A stretch of DNA of 64,000 nt from Dicyema japonicum (lineage: Eukaryota; Animalia; Dicyemida), in assembly GCA_011109175.1 (NCBI GenBank), contig RDEW01000036.1:375583-439582 (forward strand). Direction: 5' to 3'. Shown piece after piece: positions 1,000 through 47,233 of the stretch. Position 1 is the first letter of the stretch. Every line of letters starts with the position of its first letter. The translations under genes and the position numbers were made by a program. The notes under the pieces are model-generated. The model had not been told where the DNA came from. It saw only the letters and a program-made list of their open reading frames with translations, and made no database searches.

Positions 1000-1900
1000 C
1001 ATAGCAATTAGAAACACACAGCATTTTTCGTGATAGGCATGGTACTTATAGCTCCGCACGGGCGGACAGACAAGTGGAGACCAGCTCTAAGCGCCATATG
1101 TTTTTTGAAATCCTTCGAACGGCAGAGTCAGAACGGGGCAGTTAGAATTAACTAATAATACAATAAGTGATGCATAAAAGAAATCAAAACAGTACGAAAA
1201 TGAGAACATTTAATCTCATCAGGTCTCTCTTGTCGTTCGGTTTATTAAGAATTAGATATATGTTAAATCTGACTCAGCTTATTCGCCTTCTTTTAGAGAC
1301 AGGCCCAGTCACACTTTAGGCTCTTTGTATTAAATGGGAAGTAATGAGATGAGTATTCCTTCCAGCAATTTCCTCATTCTGACTTTCAAGCAAACAACAT
1401 CCTTCAATAGCTCGTTCATTGTCGATCATTCAAATATCAATATAAGTTTCCCACAAACCGTTCTTTGTGACCAACCATATTTATGTTCTACCTGCATTCT
1501 CTCAGGACTCTTTCTGATAGCAACAGTCTGAATATATGTTTGTATAGTGTCATCCACGTTGAGTGTGCTTTGATTGTGTTTATAGAATTTGCTCACAATG
1601 CCATCCATGTTCGTATATTAGTACTATGTTTACTTTAGCATTGTGAATTAATACCACTTCGCTAGCAAGGATCGTATTTATGAAGTTTTTCAAATTTTCA
1701 GAGAAATCTCCTTTGGTCTGCAGGAATTGAGCACGCAATAAGAGTTACCCCTTATTATTTCGAGCCCAATGTTCTAAAGAGCCATATAATCATTCTAGAC
1801 TCTCCATTCCTCAATCCTACGAGCCATCTGAAATTAACTAATTTATGTTTGAAATTAAAAAGGTATAGAAAATTCGGTATTCAAAAATAAAAATCGTGGA
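1000..1900 (-). mobile_element. Probable heavily decayed LINE 3' remnant with GC-rich structured end
   Basis: Intronless broken reading frames on the minus strand and a GC-rich hairpin block at 1039-1097. Weak evidence. Confidence 0.25.
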
Positions 1901-1974
1901 GTTTTGTAGACATGCAATCTTTCTCAACGAGGGGCGATTTTTTAATTAGTGATATTTTTTTAATTATTTATTTA

Positions 1975-2085
1975 TTATTTATTAAAACCACAAATCACCG
2001 ATAAATTAAATAACTACATAGCCGTCAAGTGATTCCGGCGCCTCGAATAGCTATCTCATTCTTGCTTGGTGTTCCTCTCTGTTGT
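1975..2085 (-). mobile_element. Short 3' end of an Ingi/Vingi-like LINE
   Basis: Homologous to 63110-63215. Encodes EEHQARMR..., like the C-terminus EEHRKNLSILLRRTGIT* of the 35.7-kb element, and has a (TAA)n-like tail. Confidence 0.6.
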
Positions 2086-2650
2086 GGACTGCAAAGGACT
2101 TCATCCGTTTTCTTGCAGTTTCAGCAGAGGCCGGTTCCTGAAGCATGCCGCAATCAACGGGGTTGTGAAGCTTTCTCTCGAGGCGGGTGGATTCCCGTCA
2201 TCTCTGGAACCTGTGAGCCTGGAATGTGGAGATAGAAAGCGCTCAGACGGGTTAACTGTCTTTCCCTTTTTTCGGGGAAATACTTGATTTGGGATGGGGC
2301 CTGTAACGAAACCTTCTCCCAGTCGAGACTTGCTGGTTCCACATTGAAAGTTGGGGAGGCTGCTCGGATTTCAAGAATTTCAAGATTAGAAATACTACAG
2401 TCTCATTTCACCAGATATCATGTACAGCCTGTTGTCGTCGAGATAAGCTGAGTTTTTTGGCTCAAGATGGTCTCTTTCCTAAGATCGCTTGGGTTAATGA
2501 TATGGAAAGTGAGTAATGAGCGTCGAGAAACAAATGGCAGTTACATAGATTTCTCTGGCAGTTCTCAAGGGAAACAGTCATTCTATCCTGTTAGCTGATT
2601 ATTTTGATTGCCTTATAACGTAATAAATTGTTTTTGATTGAAAAATAAAT
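2085..2650 (+). mobile_element. CRE-like non-LTR retrotransposon 3' remnant (restriction-like endonuclease)
   Basis: FLKHAAINGVV...LEP...DRKRSDGLTVFPF..G.YLIWD, colinear with 9990-10470. Confidence 0.8.
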
Positions 2651-2799
2651 AATACAGCATGAAACCTTTTGATGGTACCTGTTAAAATGGTACTTAACCG
2701 CTACTTTCCTGCATATATCGTTAATTGTTACTTAAAATCATTATAGAGACACAAGATTTTCAATTTTTAACAAATTTAAATCAGATCCTAAAAAACTCG

Positions 2800-2935
2800 G
2801 GCGCTATCCATTTCCACGATCCAGGCCCACCGGTTCCAGAGATGATGGGAATCCAGCCGCCTCAAGAGAGCACTTCACAACCCCGTTGATGGCAGCATGC
2901 CTCCAGAACATGTCACTGCTGAGATGGCAAAGTCT
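2800..2935 (-). mobile_element. Small inverted CRE-like fragment
   Basis: The reverse complement resembles 2115-2250 (gcatgc...caacggggttgtgaag...ggattccc.tcatctctggaacc). Confidence 0.6.
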
Positions 2936-3467
2936 AGTATCATTACTGTAGTTATTATGGGGGTGGGGGTGATAAATTATTTATAGGGACGAAAATTTTT
3001 TCATAAAAGTGGTAAAACAGGTAAAGGTTTTATCGTCGTCAGTTCCTCTATCATTTGTCCCTTCCTCTTAACAATAATCGATTCAGTTCGATTAAACAGG
3101 GTTAGTTACCTGTTTCCAAAGACATTTCCTTAGTGACCTATTTCGACGAGTTCTTCTGACTGCTCTTCTGGCACAGTTGTTGAAAGGGATCTTTTTACCT
3201 TCTCCCAGACCAAATCCACAGGTGAAGATTGCCATTATGAAAAATCTCATCCATGAATGAGGTGATATCCGCGACGGTAGGACATGTGATGATAATGGAA
3301 AACGGTGGACCTACTTCTCCACCTCTTTTCTGAAGCGTAGACTGTAATGGACAATTGTAGAATTTATTTGGTAACCACAAGTTCTTTCGGTGAAAGAGTA
3401 TATTACAGAGGATAAGCTTTATCATAGACAGCATAAAAATTAACCCAAGTTAAAGAAAATGGTAATA

Positions 3468-4296
3468 TCAAAATTTGAGTAATATTGACCTAGAAAGTTC
3501 GGTGGGTCTTGTCCACTTTTTGAAATAATGAATAACAATGAATATCAATATGACCACTGCCAATAAAATAGTAGTCACGATTATTGTGATTTTGTGATTA
3601 TTAGGAAATGACTTGTTTGAGACATTACTTGAATTGGAACAGCTTTGCACTAAAATATACAAATCAAAGTAAACCATAACCGACATATCCAGTAATATCC
3701 TCATCCTTGAATAGTTGGAACTTTAAACAGAAACATTGAGAGAGACACCATTGGAAAACTTTTTAAAGATAATTTGACATAGAAAGTACTGAGTATATTT
3801 AATAAACTGCCGATCAAATTTGATTGTTAAATTATCAGAATTATCTAAGAATAAATGATGTTAATTACCAATGGATAATTCGATCTTTTCAGGTAATATT
3901 GCTTGTCGGATACCAAGGGAATCGTGAAATATAAATCAACGTCTTTCGATGATAAAATTACAACGATTTTATCTTTCAATGAACTTTCAATTAATCGGAC
4001 ATTTGTTTTATTGAGTGTATAGCTTAGATTCTGACATTAAAGGTTAGTTTACGCTTACCCTTTTGGTGTGGTCGACTTTTATATTTACATTTAAAATTCC
4101 AATTAGTTCATTATTTTCATTATGTATGAAATATATATTTGGATTTGGGATGTTTTTTTCTAATTTTTGGGTGCATGCGATTGCTAAGTTCAATTAATAG
4201 TAAATGACAACCATTATCAGTATAAACCATTTGATTCAGAACTACAGGACTTACTAAGATAATTAATAATTCATAAGCATATAAGGATATGGGCAT
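3468..4296 (-). CDS. Uncharacterised type I membrane protein, family member 1 (frameshifted or pseudogene)
   Basis: Signal-like start MPISLYAYELLIILVSPV, then YFLCQIIFKKFSNGVSLNVS, a phase-1 intron before VQSC, and TM ITIIVTTILLAVVILIFIVIHYF. The 5' end is homologous at nucleotide level to 22970-23075. Confidence 0.6.
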
Positions 4297-4744
4297 TTAT
4301 AGGTTATTATTTATAAGTTATTTTATAAATATTAAATTATTATTAATTTAATAAAAAATTAAATAAATAAGATTTTTTTGTTATTTATAATTTATTTAGC
4401 AAAAAGTTAATTCACTTCGCTACTTAGGAAAGCTACAATCCGTAGTCACGGATTCTGATTACTCCGCGTCAGTGAGAAAGATGGAATCTCTCGTACCCTC
4501 TCCAAATCCAAGGAAAAAGATGACTGATTTGGAAAAAAGTTCTCTTCCCCAATCAGATTCCTCTGTAAGAAGGAGAAGGCTATTTTGTAGTGAAAAATGG
4601 AAGACCGCAGACATTGGGTAGTTCAGTTGATTGCGGGGACTTTGATCACTTAACTACTTGACGTTTTTTCTTTCTTTTTTTCGGTAATCCCTGGGTTCTA
4701 TATAATAACTAAAATATTTTGTTTTTCACGTAAGTCACCTGATC

Positions 4745-4950
4745 ATGGACAACGCTGTTTTCAGTTGTTGCGAACGGACCCAACTTATTTCCCTTACCAA
4801 GCGACACAAAATAGTTTGTTTGGTAGTGGTTACGGGAAGAGCGCCAAGCTACCGTTCTTCTTTAATCAGGTGTGGTGACGTTGAACCTAACCCTGTACCA
4901 GAGTCATTTCAGCGAAAGTTGAAGATATTGCAGTTGAACATAACTTGTTC
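4745..4950 (+). mobile_element. 5' remnant of an Ingi/Vingi-like LINE with a degenerate 2A motif
   Basis: SLIRCGDVEPNPVP followed by KLKILQLNI, the start of an APE endonuclease. Confidence 0.65.
4821..4950 (+). repeat. 130-bp direct repeat, copy 1 (putative long TSD)
   Basis: Matches 7166-7295 with 2 substitutions by eye. Confidence 0.95.
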
Positions 4951-5665
4951 GGAACGGAACGGAAAAATTTTTATTAGGCAAAACAAGTAGTTAGAAATTA
5001 GGGAAGAACTAGACTAAGAACCCTTTCACCGCCTTGCGGCAGCGTTTTCGTGGCATCACTTTCGTCTTCCCCGTGCCTCCTTCTTTAATTTAGTTTCAAG
5101 ATCTTTTTAATAACTTCCTCCGGGTCCTTAAAATCCGGATATCCTCTTTCGAACAGCGGCGCTCGTATTGCCCGCCGCCGAACCTTCCTCAAGTTGGTGA
5201 GGCACTTTTCGCGTTCCTCACTGCAATACCAGGAGTGCGCACCATAAGTGAGCATAGGCAGCACCATGGCGTTGAACACTTTGGCCCAGGCATCGCGACT
5301 CAGCTGAAAAGCCCTCAACGCTCCTAGTCTTTGCACAGCCCGCCTCTTAACGAGGGCGGTGTGCTCCTCGAAACTACACTTGGAGTTGAATGTCACTCCA
5401 AGGTAGCTCGTCCGCCCAGTAACCTCTATAGGTACCCCATAGATGGTTACTCTAGGTATTAAATTATTAGACCGCTTAGGGCGGCCAAAAACTAACAACT
5501 TGCATTTCTCAGGTCTCAGCCTAAGTCTTCTGCTCCAACACCAGCGTATGATTTCATTGACGGCTACTTGAATCCTCCGACACGCTACATCTGGTTTCCA
5601 CGAGTGATCCCAGAGTACTATGTCGTCCGCATAGACAGCCATCTCCGTCCTCACATTGGCCGGGT
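4951..5665 (-). mobile_element. 5'-truncated APE-type LINE 3' end (RT C-terminus, 3'UTR, AATAAA, (TTCCG)n tail)
   Basis: ORF 5085..5792 contains YADD, YLGVTF and LTYGAHSW. The minus strand ends ...cctaataaaaatttttccgttccgttcc. Confidence 0.9.
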
Positions 5666-6060
5666 GGGGGGAATAGGGGGGTGGTAAAATTTTTGTAAAA
5701 AGTGCATTTGTTGATTTTAACGGACCGGGCACCTTTAGAAGAGCCTTGGTTTTATAAAGGAAGCCAGCTTGTCTGCTTGATTGAGGACGCATCTGTTCTT
5801 TTGCATGGTTTTATCACTCAAAAGGCATTTTTCACTGCAGGGTATTACTGAAATGAAAAAAAGGTGTATCCATTCAGTGAAGCAATTTTATCGGTGTGGG
5901 CAATTGTCGGTTGATTATTATAAAAGGGTCCTATATTACAGTGAAAGGCAGTTCTTTGCAGTATACTGCATCATTTTGTTGCACAAGTGCTTTTAGCACG
6001 GTTACTAAATGTAAATACATGCATAAGCCCATGTAAGTGTGGGTTATTGCTGTGAAAAGA
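5666..6060 (+). other. Putative rDNA 5' external transcribed spacer fragment
   Basis: Lies directly upstream of the 18S 5' end and RT homology stops at ~5665. Identity as ETS is inferred from position only. Confidence 0.5.
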
Positions 6061-6896
6061 TAGCTGGTTGATCCTGCCAGTAGTCATATGCTTATCTTAC
6101 AGATTAAGCCATGCAAGTGTAAGTTCATGCTCTCTAATGAGCGAAACCGCGAACGGCTCATTAAATCGGACATAACTTACTTGATAATCTCACACGACGG
6201 TGGATAACTGTTGTAAATCTAGAGCTAATACATGCGTACAGCTTCTCGAAGCGCAATTATTAGAATTAGTTGACTCTGGATAAACTTGCTGATCACAGGC
6301 AGTGCCTGCGACGTATTAATTAGATGTCCGCCCCATCAATTTTCGACGGTGAGGTAGTGGCTTACCGTGGTTACAACGGGTAACGGGGAATCAGGGTTCG
6401 ATTCCGGAGAGGGAGCATGAGAAATGGCTGCCAGATCTATGGATTGCAGCAGGTGCGTAAATTATCCACTTTTGGCATAAAGAGATAGTGATGATAAATA
6501 ACGGGATCTGGGCATTTGTTCAGAGATCGTAATGAAATAATCGTAAAAGCTTTAATGAAGGCAATTGGAGGGCAAGTCTGGTGCCAGCAGCCGCGGCAAT
6601 TCCAGTTCCAATAGTGTATAAAAGTTGCTGCAGTTGAAAAGCTCGTAGTTGGATCTCGGTTTGCTTGTGTGTAATACATGCAAGTAGGCCATTGCTGTAG
6701 TTAGTCTATGGCTTTACCTTGAACAAAATAGAGTGCTTAAGGCAAGCATTCTGCTTGAATATCTCAGCATGGAATAATAGAAAAAGACTTTTCTATTGGT
6801 TAACAGTAGCAAAGTAATGATTAACAGAGACAGACGGGGGCATTCGTATTGCACCGCTAGAGGTGAAATTCGTAGACCGGTGCAGGACGAACTACA

Positions 6897-6945
<49 letters not shown>

Positions 6946-7086
6946 AGTATCGAAGTCGATTAGATCTCGTCGTAGTTCCAACTATAAACGATGCCAACTA
7001 GTACCCCGCTAATAAGTATTTGTACATTAGCGGGTTGCTTCCGGGAAACCAAAGTCTTTGGGCTCCGGGGGAAGTATGGTTGCAAA

Positions 7087-7135
<49 letters not shown>

Positions 7136-7165
7136 GCGGCTCAATTTGACTCAACACAGAAAAAC
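6061..7165 (+). rRNA. 18S rRNA: 18S rRNA gene fragment (5' ~1.1 kb, 3'-truncated orphan copy)
   Basis: Universal motifs ctggttgatcctgccagtagtcatatgct, gtgccagcagccgcgg and aaacttaaaggaattgacggaagggcaccaccaggagtggagcctgcggc. Stops at gactcaacacagaaaaac. Variable regions are short. Confidence 0.97.
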
Positions 7166-7295
7166 TGGTAGTGGTTACGGGAAGAGCGCCAAGCTACCGT
7201 TTTTCTTTAATCAGGTGTGGTGACGTTAAACCTAACCCTGTACCAGAGTCATTTCAGCGAAAGTTGAAGATATTGCAGTTGAACATAACTTGTTC
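7166..7295 (+). repeat. 130-bp direct repeat, copy 2
   Basis: Matches 4821-4950. Confidence 0.95.
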
Positions 7296-7499
7296 AACAT
7301 CCCCCTACGTTTTTAACATCCCCCTTCTTTCAGCAGATGGGAGATTCACAATATTTTCGCTTGCGCAAGAGCACCTAATGTCGTCATGAAGGTATTAGAA
7401 AAAGAAAACGAATTGCAGCTCGCTTCCTAATGGTCCCATGGCTCCTACAATCTATTTATTATACCAGACGTTCCACAGTTCTACCTGGTAAATCTCTTA

Positions 7500-7940
7500 A
7501 AATTCTTTAACCTTACCTGTTTGTCTCTTTATTCTAAAATTGAAGATTAAGTAATTATTTCCTCAGTAAAGGGGGCAGTTACAAGAACAAACAGAAAAGG
7601 CTTAATTTTCGGTGATCGAATGTAATTGTTGCTCGTTAGGGAAACTGGCTCGAAACACCTAATTATCCATAAATTTGGAATACATAGTTGAACTTACTCG
7701 ATTAGCTTCATTAATAAATATCTGCAAATCTGAAAACTATTAAGGACTTTAGTATGCACATAAAGTATCGTAAATCATCGCCAATATTGTTTTTTATTTT
7801 AGTACTTGCCTGTGTAGAATTGTATTTAAAAATCCTGGAAGATATCTTAAAAATTACTAAAACTATTCGATCAATAACAACACAATACGAAGAAGAATGA
7901 CCAGTAAAATCATCGGCGTGATAGACGAACAATGTACTAC
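7500..7940 (-). pseudogene. Degenerate member of the type I membrane protein family, 5' part lost next to the CRE insertion
   Basis: DDLRYFMCILKSLIV..DLQIFINE, an intron before CFEP, and hydrophobic PFLFVLVTAP. Contains frameshifts. Confidence 0.4.
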
Positions 7941-7944
7941 TTTA

Positions 7945-10528
7945 GGTGATTTACCGTCAACTCGGAGAGGTTGCAAAAGGAACAGAGGATATCTTTTAAC
8001 TCACCCAGTTTACCTACGTACGTTGGTAAAGAAGGGGTGGCCCACATCATAGACGAGCCTTAGGAAATATTTGCTTGTTTTCTTCTGGAAATTTGTTCAG
8101 TGACTCCCGAGAATATACCTTCAAGCCCTCAAACCACGAGAACCATGCCTCAGAAACACAAAGATTGAGAAGAGCGATACATCGCAAACTATCTGAAGGT
8201 GGAGTCCGGGCCGCCGTGAGGACTCTAGAAGAGCATAACCGTCTAATTGAGCCAACTGAACACTCCTACGATGCACTGGTTGAACGACATCCTGGTCCGC
8301 CAGTGGACGAGCAGATCCCTACTTGCTCTGGAGAATTACCTAGTCTGATTATTTCTGAGGGGGACGTGAAAGATGCGATCCTCTCATTCGCCCCGAGCAG
8401 CAGTGGCGGACTCGACGGACTCCGTCCAGGACACCTAAAAGACTTAATTGATCAGAATACGGGGAACTCTGGTGTTCGGCTATTATCGGCTATAACGAGG
8501 TTAATCAACAGAATGCTTTCCGGAAGATTACCAGAAGCAATCCGTCATATTATGTTTTCCGCCAAGTTAATTGCCTTTGATAAATGTGGAGGAGGAATTC
8601 GTCCTATTGCTGTTGGGTTTGTTTTTCGTCGACTGGCTTCTAAACTTGCTAGCAGAGCAATCCTTCCGATGCTTGTCAAACAACTGCGACCAACCCAAGT
8701 AGGGGTCGGTACTCCTGGTGGATGTGAGGCGGCGGTTCATGCCGTTCGGATGTTTACTGGAAACAGAACGAACATGCCTTGTGTGGTCCTCAAGATTGAC
8801 ATAAAAAACGCCTTCAATACCATACGGCGCGATGTAATTTTGGAAGATTGTCTTACCCATTACCCGTCTATATATAATTATGTTCATTGTTCGTATGGAA
8901 AACCGTCCAGTCTTGTACATGGGAAATACTTCATTCCCTCGTCGTGTGGGGTTCAACAAGGAGACCCACTAGGACCGGCATTGTTCTGCCTCGGTGTCGA
9001 CCGTGTCATGAGATGCCTTACTACTCCGCTGAACGTGTGGTATTTGGATGATTGCACCCTGGGAGGTCATCCTAACAATGTATATGACTGTCTACAGAGA
9101 TTACAAACACAATTGGATACGCTTGGTTTAAAGCTAAACGCAGCCAAATGCGAAATTGTTAATTATGGATTCTCCCGATATGAATGGAATCGGATCCTAT
9201 TAATGTTTCGGGGGATTATTCCTAAAATATCGGAAATCGAGCCGGATCATTTGGAAATACTTGGATGCCCTCTGGCTGAAACTGGAATTAACGACACTCT
9301 GTTGGCTAAAGAACAGCAACTAAGAAAAACTTTTTTACGCCTTGGGATGCTGGATGCACATACCTCTCTTTTTCTCATGAAAAACGCTTTATCCACGCAG
9401 AAATTAAATTACGTCCTTCGAGGGCTCCATGTTACCTGAAAATGCAACAACTCGGGGCGATTGACTCCCTATTCCGGTCTACGACCGAACGTATTACTAA
9501 TGTCGAATTCGACGAACAAGGATGGGAACAAGCAACCTTGCCCGTTCGCTTTGGTGGACTCGGAATTCTCTCACCATCTGATTTGGCACACCCGGCATAT
9601 CAATCCTCATTGGACTCCAATCAGAATTTGATCATGATGATTCTCCAGCTCCCATCAGAGTCGTCAAAGATCGAAGATTTGGTACACCCTAAAGTCAAAC
9701 AACTCGGGCAGAGAGACCTTTATGAGTCTGTTTGCGAGGATAAATACGAGAGGCTTTTGAAAATATCTAACCAACACCGACGAGCCTGTCTTTTAACTGC
9801 AAGATGCGAGTGGAGCGGGGCTTGGATCAATGCCCTACCATTGGAAACGTGGGAACTCACCTAGACGATGAAACGGTCCGCACCGGAGTCTCCATCAGAC
9901 TTGGATTGAAAGTTTGTCAACCCCATGAGTGCCGATGCGGCCGGAAGGTCGACTGCTATGGACATCATGCCCTTTCTTGTCGAAAAAGCGCAGGTCGATT
10001 CGCTAGACACAAGGCTATAAATGAAGTGGTAAGCGCGCCCTCGAGTTTGGCGGGATACCCATCATTCTAGAGCCAACGGGCTTGAGTAGGGATGATGGGA
10101 AGCGACCGATGGAATTACTGTCTTCCCCCTTCTCTCGGGCAAATGCTTAATTTGGGATGCTGCCTGTACTGACAGCTTTTCCCAGTCGAAACTTTTGAGG
10201 TCGGCAATGAAAGCGGAGAGGCCGCCCGTTTATATGAAAACTCAAAAATAAAGAAATACAGCAGCCTCCTAAACCGTTTCAATGTACAGCCAGTGGTCGT
10301 CGAGACGAGCGGAGTCTTTGGCCCCAAGACGGTCTCTTTCCTTAGAGCACTTGGGTGTCTATTGACCAAAGCCTCGAGGGAGCGTCGGGAAACCGAGTGG
10401 CTTTTCCAAAGGATATCCCTGGCAGTAGTCAGAGGTAACAGCCACTCGATCATATCCGCTGGACTTTAGAACGATTTCATTGTTATTGTTAAAATAAAGT
10501 ATTTTATTTAAAAAAAAAAAAAAAAAAA
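7945..10528 (+). mobile_element. CRE-clade-like non-LTR retrotransposon (RT, zinc motif, RLE) with poly(A) tail, 5'-truncated
   Basis: GGIRPIAVG, KIDIKNAFN, GVQQGDPLGP, WYLDD; CRCG..D.YGHHALSC; R(P)DGIT..WD; AATAAA then an A-run at 10510-10528. Confidence 0.92.
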
Positions 10529-19589: not shown

Positions 19590-19754
19590 TTTAGAAAACG
19601 GGAAGATTCGCATTTATATTCTCGGATTATGCGTATTTTAACAGTTTGAGTGATTTTAGATTTGATATTCCACTTATCATTACAATTGTTATTGGAAAGA
19701 CAAGTTTATATTAAATGGTAAGCACTATCACGTTAAACCTGTATTATCATCCCC

Positions 19755-20870
19755 AATGTACTGATTCAATACATAATTGTTAGTGATAGTCAACGTGGTG
19801 CCCTAAGACAGATTTTTCAGCTTTATCTTAGATTTTCTGTTACTAAGGATCTTTAATAAGTCTTCACCAAAGTAATGATTCAATACATAATTGTTAGTAA
19901 TGGTCAACTTGTAGGGCCTAAGACAGATTTAGCCAGTTTTATCAAAGATGCTCTGTTAGGATCTTAGATAAAGTTTCCCCCAAAGTAATTATTCAGTGTA
20001 TAATTGTTATGACGTCTACTTGTGATGCCCTAAGACAGATTTAGCCAGTTTTATCCAAGATGCTCTGTTAGGATCTTAGATAAAGTTTCCCCCAAAGTAA
20101 TTATTCAGTGTATAATTGTTATGACGTCTACTTGTGGTGCCCTAAGACAGATTTAGCCAGTTTTATCCAAGATGCTCTGTTTAGGATCTTAGATAAAGTT
20201 TCCCCAAAAGTAATTATTCAGTGTATAATTTTTATGACGTCTACTTGTTGGTTGCCCTAAGACAGATTTAGCCAGTTTTATTCCAAGATGCTCTGTTAGG
20301 ATCTTAGATAAAGTTTCCCCCAAAGTAATTATTCAGTGTATAATTGTTATGACGTCTACTTTGATGCCCTAAGACAGATTTAAGCCAGTTTTATCCAAGA
20401 TGCCTCTGTTAGGATCTTAGATAAAGTTTCCCCCAAAGTAATTATTCAGTGTATAATTGTTATGACGTCTACTTGTGGTGCCCTAAGACAGATTTAGCCA
20501 GTTTTATCCAAGATGCTCTGTTAGGATCTTAGATAAAGTTTCCCCCAAAGTAATTATTCAGTGTATAATTGTTATGACGTCTACTTGTGATGCCCTAAGA
20601 CAGATTTAGCCAGTTTTATCCAAGATGCTCTGTTAGGATCTTAGATAAAGTTTCCCCCAAAGTAATTATTCAGTGTATAATTGTTATGACGTCTACTTGT
20701 GATGCCCTAAGACAGATTTGACCAGTTTATCTGAGATGATCTGTTACTAAGGATGTTCGATAAAGTATCTCCCTAATGATTCAATACACAATTGCTAGTG
20801 AAATTCCACTTGGGAGTCCTGAGACGGATTTGGCATTTTTATCTAAGATACTCTTGCACTAACAATCTTG
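19755..20870. repeat. 112-bp tandem repeat array, ~7 near-identical core units plus degenerate flanking units
   Basis: taagacagattt recurs at 19919, 20031, 20143 and onward (period ~112). Confidence 0.97.
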
Positions 20871-22983: not shown

Positions 22984-24708
22984 ATGACTTTATCATTGTG
23001 TGGATATGAATTATTAATTATTTTAATAAGTCCTGTAATTCCATATCAAATGGTTTATATACTAATGGTGGCATAGATCATTTAAATAACTATACATTGC
23101 ATGTATGACTAAACGTGTAAATCTCTGGTATGCTCGAAATAAAGCACTTTTAAGTGCAAACATAAATGTAACATATGTGAAAGATTATAAAGTTTGTAAA
23201 TTTTTATTAATATTAGAATATGAATTTCATATTTAATGAGGAAAATTTAAACTTATATAGAATTGAACTAAATGATAAAATTGTTCTAATTTTATCATCA
23301 CATGATATTAAGTTATATTTTACGTTCATTTTGAAACCTGGAAAGATTTATTTACTTGAAAAATAGAACTCTCGATTAGTACCTATATTTATTAATTTCT
23401 CAGATCAATCTGATGTTCACAAGATTACACTTGATCAACAATTGATTCCAGAAAATCGTGACTATGAATGTCAAACTATATTTAAAAAATTTTCTTCAGA
23501 TGTTTCTCTCAATATATCTTGTTTAAGGACCAAAATATTCAATAATAGAAATACTATCCAATTTAGTTCTCTTGGTTGTTGTACTTATTTATTTTAGGAC
23601 GATATTGTTTGAATTCTACAGATACGACAGTCCATCGAATATTATCAAAACAGAAAATAAAACTAAACTGTCTACCAAAAAATGACAATTCCAAATATTA
23701 AACCATCATATAAGTAACAAGAAAATCATACTTTCCTCTACAAATAATGTTAAACCATCAATAGTAACCGAAAATTTTACATTCGTCTACAAATAATATC
23801 AAACCATCATATAGTAACAAGAAAATCATACTTTCCTCTACAAATAATATTGAACCATCATCTAGTAACAAGAAAATCATACTTTCCTCTACAAGTAATA
23901 TCAAACCATCATATAGTACAAGAAAATCATACTTTCCTCTACAAATAATATTAAACCATCATATAGTAACAAGAAAATCATACTTTCCTCTACAAATAAT
24001 ATCAAACCATCATATAGTAACAAGAAAATCATACTTTCCTCTACAAATAATATTAAACCATCATATAGTAACAAGAAAATCATACTTTCCTCTACAAGTA
24101 ATATCAAACCATCACATAGTAACAAGAAAATCATACTTTCCTCTACAAATAATATTAAACCATCATATAGTAACAAGAAAATCATACATTCCTCTACAAG
24201 TAATATAAACCATTATATAGTAACAAGAAAATCATACTTTCCTCTACAAATAATATTAAACCATCATATAGTAACAAGAAAATCATACTTTCCTCTACAA
24301 ATAATATAAACCATATAGTAACAAGAAAATCATACTTTCCTCTACAAATAATATTAAACCATCATATAGTAACAAGAAAATCATACTTTCCTCTACAAAT
24401 AATATTAAACCATCATATAGTAACAAGAAAATCATACATTCCTCTACAAGTAATATTAAACCATCATATAGTAACAAGAAAATCATACATTCCTCTACAA
24501 ATAATATTAAACCATCATATAGTAACAAGAAAATCATACTTCCTCTACAAATAATATTAAACCATATATAGTAAACAGAAAGTTATAATATCCATTCTTT
24601 ACTGTGTCGTTGATATTGGCTTTGGTCTTGATAATCATAGTAATTGTTTTATTCCATAGAAGAGATAAATTTAGGTTATTAACAAACACTAATTCATTGT
24701 CTGGTTAA
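22984..24708 (+). CDS. Type I membrane protein, family member 2, with Ser/Thr/Asn-rich repeat stalk
   Basis: Signal-like MTLSLCGYELLIILISPV; RDYECQTIFKKFSSDVSLNISC; phase-1 intron before GRYC; 17-aa repeats; TM FTVSLILALVLIIIVIVLF. Indels occur in the array. Confidence 0.6.
23695..24575 (+). repeat. 51-bp coding minisatellite, ~17 units (KPSYSNKKIILSSTNNI)
   Basis: Unit aaaccatcatatagtaacaagaaaatcatactttcctctacaaataatatt. Confidence 0.95.
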
Positions 24709-44262: not shown

Positions 44263-44644
44263 TTTTTAATTTATGTTAATGAATGATTAAGCTTGATGAT
44301 CGGTTCTCTCATCAGGATCTCATACAAAGAATCTACAAGAAATAGGGATGTAAGATGATAGAATATCGCTGGCACATCCTGAAGATGGAGTTGACCTAAC
44401 GGAGCAATGGAAGTCTACTCTTTCGCCTAGAGGGCCGTTTTCGTGGAAAGTCTAGGATAACTTTGACATTCGTGTTACAAAAGGACTTAAAATCGTAAAA
44501 TGATAATTAAAATCCGCTGACGTCCTGGACACACTAAGAACGGTAGATAATAGAGGTGTGGAAGAGATTGACTTCCAAATTCGATGTCAATAAATGGCTT
44601 TCGTGGTAGTTCTAATAATACCATTTTTAATTTCCAATGGATTT
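44263..44644. repeat. ~380-bp direct repeat, copy 1 (copy 2 at 46860-47233)
   Basis: High identity by eye. Confidence 0.9.
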
Positions 44645-46859: not shown

Positions 46860-47233
46860 TTTTTAATTTATGTTAATAAGTGATTAAGCTTGATGATCGG
46901 TTCTCTCATCAGGATCTCATACAAAAGAATCTACAAGAAATGGGGATGTAAGATGATAGAATATCGCTGGCACATCCTGAAGATGGAGTTGACCTAACGG
47001 AGCAATGGAAGACTACTCTTTCGCCGTTTTTGTGGAAAGTCTAGTATAACTTTGAGATTCGTTTTACAAAAGGACTTAAAATTGTAAAATGAGAATTAAA
47101 ATCCGCTGACGTCCTGGACACAATAAGAACCGTAGATAATAGAAATGTAGAAGAAATTGACTTCCAAATTCGATGTCAATAAATGACTTTCGTGGAAGTT
47201 CTAATAATACCATTTTTAGTTTCCAGTGGATTT
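46860..47233. repeat. ~375-bp direct repeat, copy 2
   Basis: Matches 44263-44644. Confidence 0.9.

Follow-up and report, generated by a model that had tools for sequence, protein, structure and literature searches.

A 5'-truncated Jockey-like LINE and an inverted pre-rRNA piece within one 130-bp target-site duplication in Dicyema japonicum: a probable case of twin priming on two RNAs

In the 64,000-nucleotide stretch of the Dicyema japonicum genome analysed here (the window), the 3' end of a LINE and the 5' part of a ribosomal transcript lie head to head between two copies of a 130-bp repeat, which raises the question of whether they were inserted together and, if so, from one RNA or from two. 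The insertion lies in a fragment of an older LINE, now decayed, whose 5' part forms the left flank of the locus (4612-4820, plus strand); this flank is 88% identical to a paralog (L003, C2) and runs unbroken into the left repeat copy (4821-4950, plus strand), which codes for the 2A-like motif and the start of the APE domain of the host LINE. Adjoining it on the minus strand is the 3' end of a 5'-truncated LINE (4951-5672, about 720 nt) of a dispersed, apparently Jockey-like APE family; the piece starts shortly ahead of the RT YADD motif and ends in a tail (4951-4985, minus strand) composed of AATAAA, a T-run and (TTCCG)x3. Beyond the head-to-head junction of what would be the two cDNA ends (5670-5674, with 0-2 unassigned bases), a 5' leader (5' ETS) of the rDNA of about 386 nt (5674-6060, plus strand) begins at TAGGGGGG, the putative Pol I start, and leads into the 5' 1.1 kb of 18S rRNA (6061-7166, plus strand; Rfam RF01960), which is 3'-truncated just past the helix-31 loop and the continuation of which is seen in other copies. 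The right repeat copy (7166-7295, plus strand) is followed by the right flank (7296-7406, plus strand), where the host LINE fragment resumes, 91% identical to the paralog and colinear with it after one repeat copy.

The two repeat copies are 98% identical over 130 nt and differ by two transitions (4857 C/T and 4883 G/A). The direct repeat described in an earlier note on this DNA is thus borne out, as is its minus-strand LINE 3' end with AATAAA and a TTCCG tail touching the left repeat copy, the tail consisting of three units. The junction, placed by that note at ~5665, is moved by the limits of homology to 5670-5674: LINE homology reaches 5669-5672 and rDNA homology starts from 5674/5675, leaving at most two unassigned bases between them. 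At the opposite end, one base (T) is common to the end of the 18S piece (6061 to 7165/7166) and the right repeat copy. Ns are absent from positions 3500-9000 of the window.

The 130-bp repeat is a target-site duplication (TSD): its sequence is internal to a fragment of an older LINE, and a one-copy paralog bears both flanks. The 130 bp are an internal stretch of an older LINE family, with 34 relatives of 72-91% identity in which homology extends past both sides of the repeat; a mobile unit with exactly these ends is ruled out by this continuation. In the paralog a single 130-bp copy is preceded by the left flank of the window and followed by its right flank, so that the empty site is provided by a paralog and not by an allele. 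Compared with the paralog, both repeat copies lack 36 nt, a deletion that is therefore older than the duplication. The host family itself (window 4745-4950 and 7296-7406; also L004, L007 and L010) carries a 2A-like DVEPNPGP sequence just before the APE domain. Such 2A-like motifs are known in other invertebrate LINEs.

The inserted LINE can be assigned, by similarity to named RTs, to a dispersed Jockey-like APE family. Its ORF matches Pfam RVT_1 (E 6e-5), the named protein matches of its RT are jockey-type RTs (33-36%), the closest protein match comes from an Octopus sinensis assembly (54%), in keeping with the life of D. japonicum as a parasite in octopus kidneys, and the end of an APE domain with its C-terminal SDH motif is found upstream of the RT in the family. 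A search of the 67.54-Mb, 377-contig assembly gave 45 matches on many contigs. The window copy differs from its closest sister by about 2% substitutions and has a private 24-nt deletion; tails of sister copies are built of TTCCG, TTCA or ATCG units. The LINE in the window stops at a C-rich motif, at which copy L021 stops too. Six copies (window 5630-5672, L013, L021, L027, L028 and L029) have a 5' truncation or the end of an internal deletion inside one interval of about 45 nt, beside the RT YADD codons and the C-rich motif, which possibly marks a stall site of the RT. The nick context at the window locus is TTC/AA, and the four TSD-verified copies have no motif in common. This LINE also occurs in a histone H3 tandem array (C343:116000-157000; L017 and L038), most of whose 5.1-5.5-kb units contain its tails (see also L029, C246); three copies with different tail types end at one point just upstream of the H3 start codon, a possible insertion hot spot.

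Association with rDNA was found at none of the other positions read: rDNA is absent within 1.5 kb of 29 out of 29 other LINE copies, of the LINE matches listed, none comes closer than 20 kb to an rDNA fragment listed, and none of the rDNA fragments spanning the 18S end, ITS1 and 5.8S carries the inserted LINE. Insertion at a fixed rDNA site does not describe this family, all 29 other loci having non-rDNA flanks in an assembly that contains rDNA as fragments only; the live array is absent, and rDNA-resident copies could hide there.

The ribosomal piece is recognised by Rfam SSU_rRNA_eukarya at 6064-7067 on the plus strand (798 bits). Window 5675-6060 is 99% identical to the sequence upstream of 18S in another copy (L042, C57), and for this reason it is identified as rDNA leader. 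The 18S-upstream and 18S cargo on the plus strand proposed previously is accordingly confirmed, and the spacer or leader nature suggested for 5666-6060 holds over 5675-6060. L042, an independent fragment, starts at the same base, 5675, and nothing upstream is common to the two copies; furthermore, TAGGGGGG fits the Pol I start consensus TATA>TANGRRRR, a consensus derived from arthropods (PMC2590618). From the second copy and the motif we infer that the leader begins at the Pol I transcription start. The rRNA piece thus looks RNA-derived, and within 6430-7165 it has only 3 private differences. The start at 6027/6028 common to three loci was considered as a processing site and rejected, the three representing one duplicated event. 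The window locus is a dead pseudogene without function.

A second chimera of the same build was found at L047 (C367:803347-807085, raw 1472-3272). It comprises, in order, a repeat of ~34 bp, a reversed (TTTCG)n tail with AATAAA, ~1 kb of a retroelement, six unassigned bases, 740 nt of 18S and the repeat again, the 18S beginning exactly at its mature first base (+1). The element belongs to a family different from that of the window LINE, with over 40 matches, internal repeats and no clear RT. L046 (another Jockey-like LINE), L044 (CRE-like 3' end, poly A) and L058 (RTE-like, decayed) likewise carry an inverted non-LTR piece, situated directly at the rRNA 5' end or close by, while a sense-orientation element at the rRNA 5' junction was seen in none of these fragments. 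A TSD is not demonstrable for L044, L046 or L058: L046 is without a long TSD and the flanks of L044 are other repeats. Genome-wide there are at least 17 independent dispersed 18S/ETS fragments and no intact rDNA array is assembled; an inverted element directly at the rRNA 5' end, or close by, is present in roughly 5 out of the some 17 independent fragments of rDNA. At the L042/L044 locus (C57:134906-146369), a CRE-like 3' end lies head to head with 18S-ITS1-5.8S, an ETS-18S fragment is followed by CRE-like sequence in sense, and an RTE element with a TAA tail is situated between them.

We propose that the window locus probably originated in a single retrotransposition event by twin priming in trans, in which each of two primers was extended on an RNA of its own. 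The observations underlying this proposal are the single TSD around both opposite pieces, the LINE tail at one TSD copy and the rRNA 3' truncation at the other, the one-copy paralog, the dispersal of the family and the recurrence of the arrangement. The LINE is 5'-truncated and has an intact tail at the TSD; the cellular RNA is opposite to it, with the 5' ends meeting; and the RNA start lies at the internal junction, putatively so in the window and exactly in L047, the RNA being 3'-truncated at the TSD. The single insertion with twin-priming geometry envisaged by the earlier note is supported by the TSD and the opposite orientations, and of the two origins it offered, the capture of two different RNAs in one event agrees with our results. 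The LINE endonuclease would nick the plus strand after 4950, and the RT, starting at the tail, would copy the LINE RNA over about 720 nt. The other strand would be broken 130 bp away, at 4821, and this second 3' end would prime inside 18S on a separate, unprocessed pre-rRNA, with extension to the RNA 5' end. Both cDNA ends would then be joined head to head, and fill-in would duplicate the 130 bp. Microhomology at the 18S/TSD junction amounts to 1 nt. The TSD start also matches 18S over 9 nt, 57 nt past the junction, a match equalled by 0.25% of random 12-mers in a post hoc comparison; this is a possible annealing site, at which priming may have begun with loss of the helix-33 region, an option that needs the extra 57-nt loss and was likewise conceived post hoc. 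The priming point would lie just 3' of the hypermodified 18S uridine, which blocks RT on mature rRNA; such a position would favour an early precursor.

A single co-transcript would yield the same geometry, if a LINE copy, resident in an rDNA unit beyond nt 1100 of the 18S, were transcribed with the pre-rRNA and this one RNA were twin-primed. The live array missing from the assembly could conceal such copies, and the family does enter another tandem gene array, the histone repeats on C343. We nevertheless regard this origin as very improbable, in view of the non-rDNA flanks of the 29 other copies read and of the rDNA fragments running through the 18S end, ITS1 and 5.8S without such a LINE; L047 would need a different element, and the pieces produced by single-RNA twin priming are normally adjacent on the RNA (PMC11702581), whereas here they would be kilobases apart. 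The rDNA-resident, co-transcribed LINE that had been suggested as the other possible source is hence not supported: the family is dispersed, none of the copies read lies near rDNA, and the second chimera uses a different element as well as a different rRNA 5' end. The rRNA may instead have been acquired as DNA, an ordinary truncated LINE insertion having been repaired at its 5' end with a piece of rDNA (filler DNA or extrachromosomal) and no reverse transcription of rRNA having taken place. More than 15 dispersed rDNA fragments, most of them without a visible LINE or TSD, and a genome rich in local duplications and deletions speak for such repair. The captured pieces, however, start at RNA ends (twice at 5675, and at mature 18S +1 in L047), the rRNA is inverted relative to the element wherever an element adjoins it, and the two ETS copies reaching 5675 have no common upstream sequence, all of which leaves DNA capture a low probability.

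The locus could also have been put together in silico. The D. japonicum genome (67.5 Mb, 377 scaffolds) is a hybrid PacBio and Illumina assembly with 1.24% heterozygosity (PMC6736024), and merging long- and short-read assemblies of pooled heterozygous animals might have joined a LINE, an rDNA piece and two flank haplotypes. The hybrid nature of the assembly, the closeness of its heterozygosity to the 1.5% difference between the repeats, the scarcity of private differences in the 18S piece (3 in 6430-7165) and the public contigs, which contain at most 61% of sampled words, are compatible with this. Against it, the repeat ends match the LINE tail and the 18S end to the base, the paralog shows the empty site, the sequence has no Ns, and other loci show the pattern again, their repeats differing by 2-6%; misassembly is therefore unlikely.

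Long TSDs are not tied to rDNA in this LINE family, since rDNA-free sister copies carry TSDs of 466 bp (L013, C310:39872), 129 bp (L016, C365:4749) and 196 bp (L021, C223:738336), whose repeats are 95-98% identical and abut the tail and the 5' truncation. Six sister copies with both ends in view have neither a short nor a long TSD, TSD searches at L017, L024 and L026 found nothing, and L012, L025, L027 and L044 are uninformative in this respect, their flanks being other repeats. With the window copy included, a TSD of at least 129 bp is present in 4 out of 10 testable copies of the family and a clear 7-20-bp TSD in 0 out of 10. A long stagger is thus a frequent and variable outcome for this LINE family, unrelated to rDNA; the lengths in other copies, the measurement of which had been recommended, extend from none up to 466 bp. 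In human L1, TSDs longer than 100 bp account for at most 10% of events in HeLa and for 57-91% in cells deficient in nucleotide excision repair (NER) (Servant et al., PMC5223499). NER-gene loss was accordingly considered as a cause and rejected: profile matches for the XPA_C, BHD_3, Rad10 and ERCC4 domains score above cut-off in the genome, and since XPA, XPC, ERCC1 and ERCC4-type domains are by this measure all present, simple gene loss is not the cause of the long TSDs. On C35 (872556-887584; L014 and L019), three copies of a repeat, each at least 1.2 kb long, are spaced 6.9 kb apart, and only the first two are followed by a LINE tail, an arrangement that could represent a kilobase TSD expanded by unequal exchange.

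The closest known counterparts of the window locus are mammalian. Doucet et al. (2015, PMC4476161) attributed chimeras of inverted U5, U1 and U2 with L1 to twin priming that involved a second RNA, and antisense 5S rRNA and tRNA-half/L1 chimeras with 7-19-bp TSDs have been described in a paper in which the large-rRNA pieces are from 28S (50-482 nt, 83% sense) and the term 18S is absent (PMC13174262). Like these, the window locus has an inverted cellular RNA beside a 5'-truncated LINE, an RNA start at the junction, a 3'-truncated RNA and one TSD; in contrast, it is found in a spiralian, its LINE is Jockey-like, its RNA is a 1.5-kb ETS-containing pre-rRNA and its TSD measures 130 bp instead of 7-19 bp. 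By its structure, the locus appears to work like the mammalian two-RNA chimeras, sharing the structural features listed above except for TSD length. TSDs that vary from 100 bp up to kilobases and adjoin a normal tail are likewise found in L1 insertions in cultured cells, where the large ones are explained by a distant, unrelated second nick (PMC5223499); unlike those, the D. japonicum insertions are natural fixed copies, they make up 4 of the 10 testable ones, and genes with XPA, XPC, ERCC1 and ERCC4 domains are still present. For L1, then, both twin priming on two RNAs and, in cultured cells, long TSDs have been described before. Less ordinary here are the length of the RNA, the second clear example, and TSDs that are about ten times longer than usual, frequent and variable.

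The comparison with rDNA-specific elements is less close. R9, the TSD of which Gladyshev and Arkhipova reportedly gave in 2009 as 126 bp, resembles the window LINE in being a non-LTR element with a TSD over 100 bp; it differs as an R2-lineage RLE element with a fixed 28S site and a fixed TSD, the window LINE being APE/Jockey-like and dispersed with TSDs of 129-466 bp. An R9-like nature of the window LINE is rejected on its Jockey-like RT with the APE SDH motif upstream and on its variable TSDs, and R9 proved a misleading precedent for the long TSD, those of this LINE (129, 130, 196 and 466 bp) being neither rDNA-linked nor fixed. R7 and R1 are rDNA-specific elements. They and R8 resemble the window locus solely in that a non-LTR element lies close to 18S: no copy of the window LINE was seen in rDNA, and the 18S here is inverted cargo outside the rDNA array. 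R9 is a non-LTR element of bdelloid rotifers with a 28S site, and R8 is an 18S-specific element of hydra (PMC5035012).

Elsewhere in the window, a decayed CRE-like (RLE) non-LTR element occupies 8075-10453, with a second fragment at about 2066-2590, and a 383-bp direct repeat of 92% identity (44263-44644 and 46860-47233) surrounds 2.2 kb in which no LINE tail was seen. Two tandem arrays are located at 19751-20746 (112-bp unit, 8.8 copies) and at 23694-24581 (51-bp unit, 17.6 copies).

Second-strand cutting and priming is the least understood step of LINE integration. The window locus and its sisters suggest that, outside mammals and in a non-L1 clade, a long Pol I transcript distinct from the LINE RNA can serve as template for the second end, and that the fixed copies of a single LINE family can range from those without a TSD to one with 466 bp. 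The window copy, moreover, has probably preserved the position of the pre-rRNA start in a lineage without an assembled rDNA array. More tentatively, and with considerable doubt on our part, a host process might routinely make the second-strand break far from the first nick, such that TSDs between 100 bp and more than 1 kb often arise in several unrelated LINE clades and the second end, staying free for a long time, frequently primes on rRNA, whether nascent or mature. If this were true, D. japonicum would be a natural germ-line system with a phenotype otherwise seen in NER-deficient human cells, and throughout its genome the process would generate local duplications and rRNA pseudogenes. Should a genome-wide census confirm a high rate, D. 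japonicum would offer a natural setting in which to test what governs the second nick.
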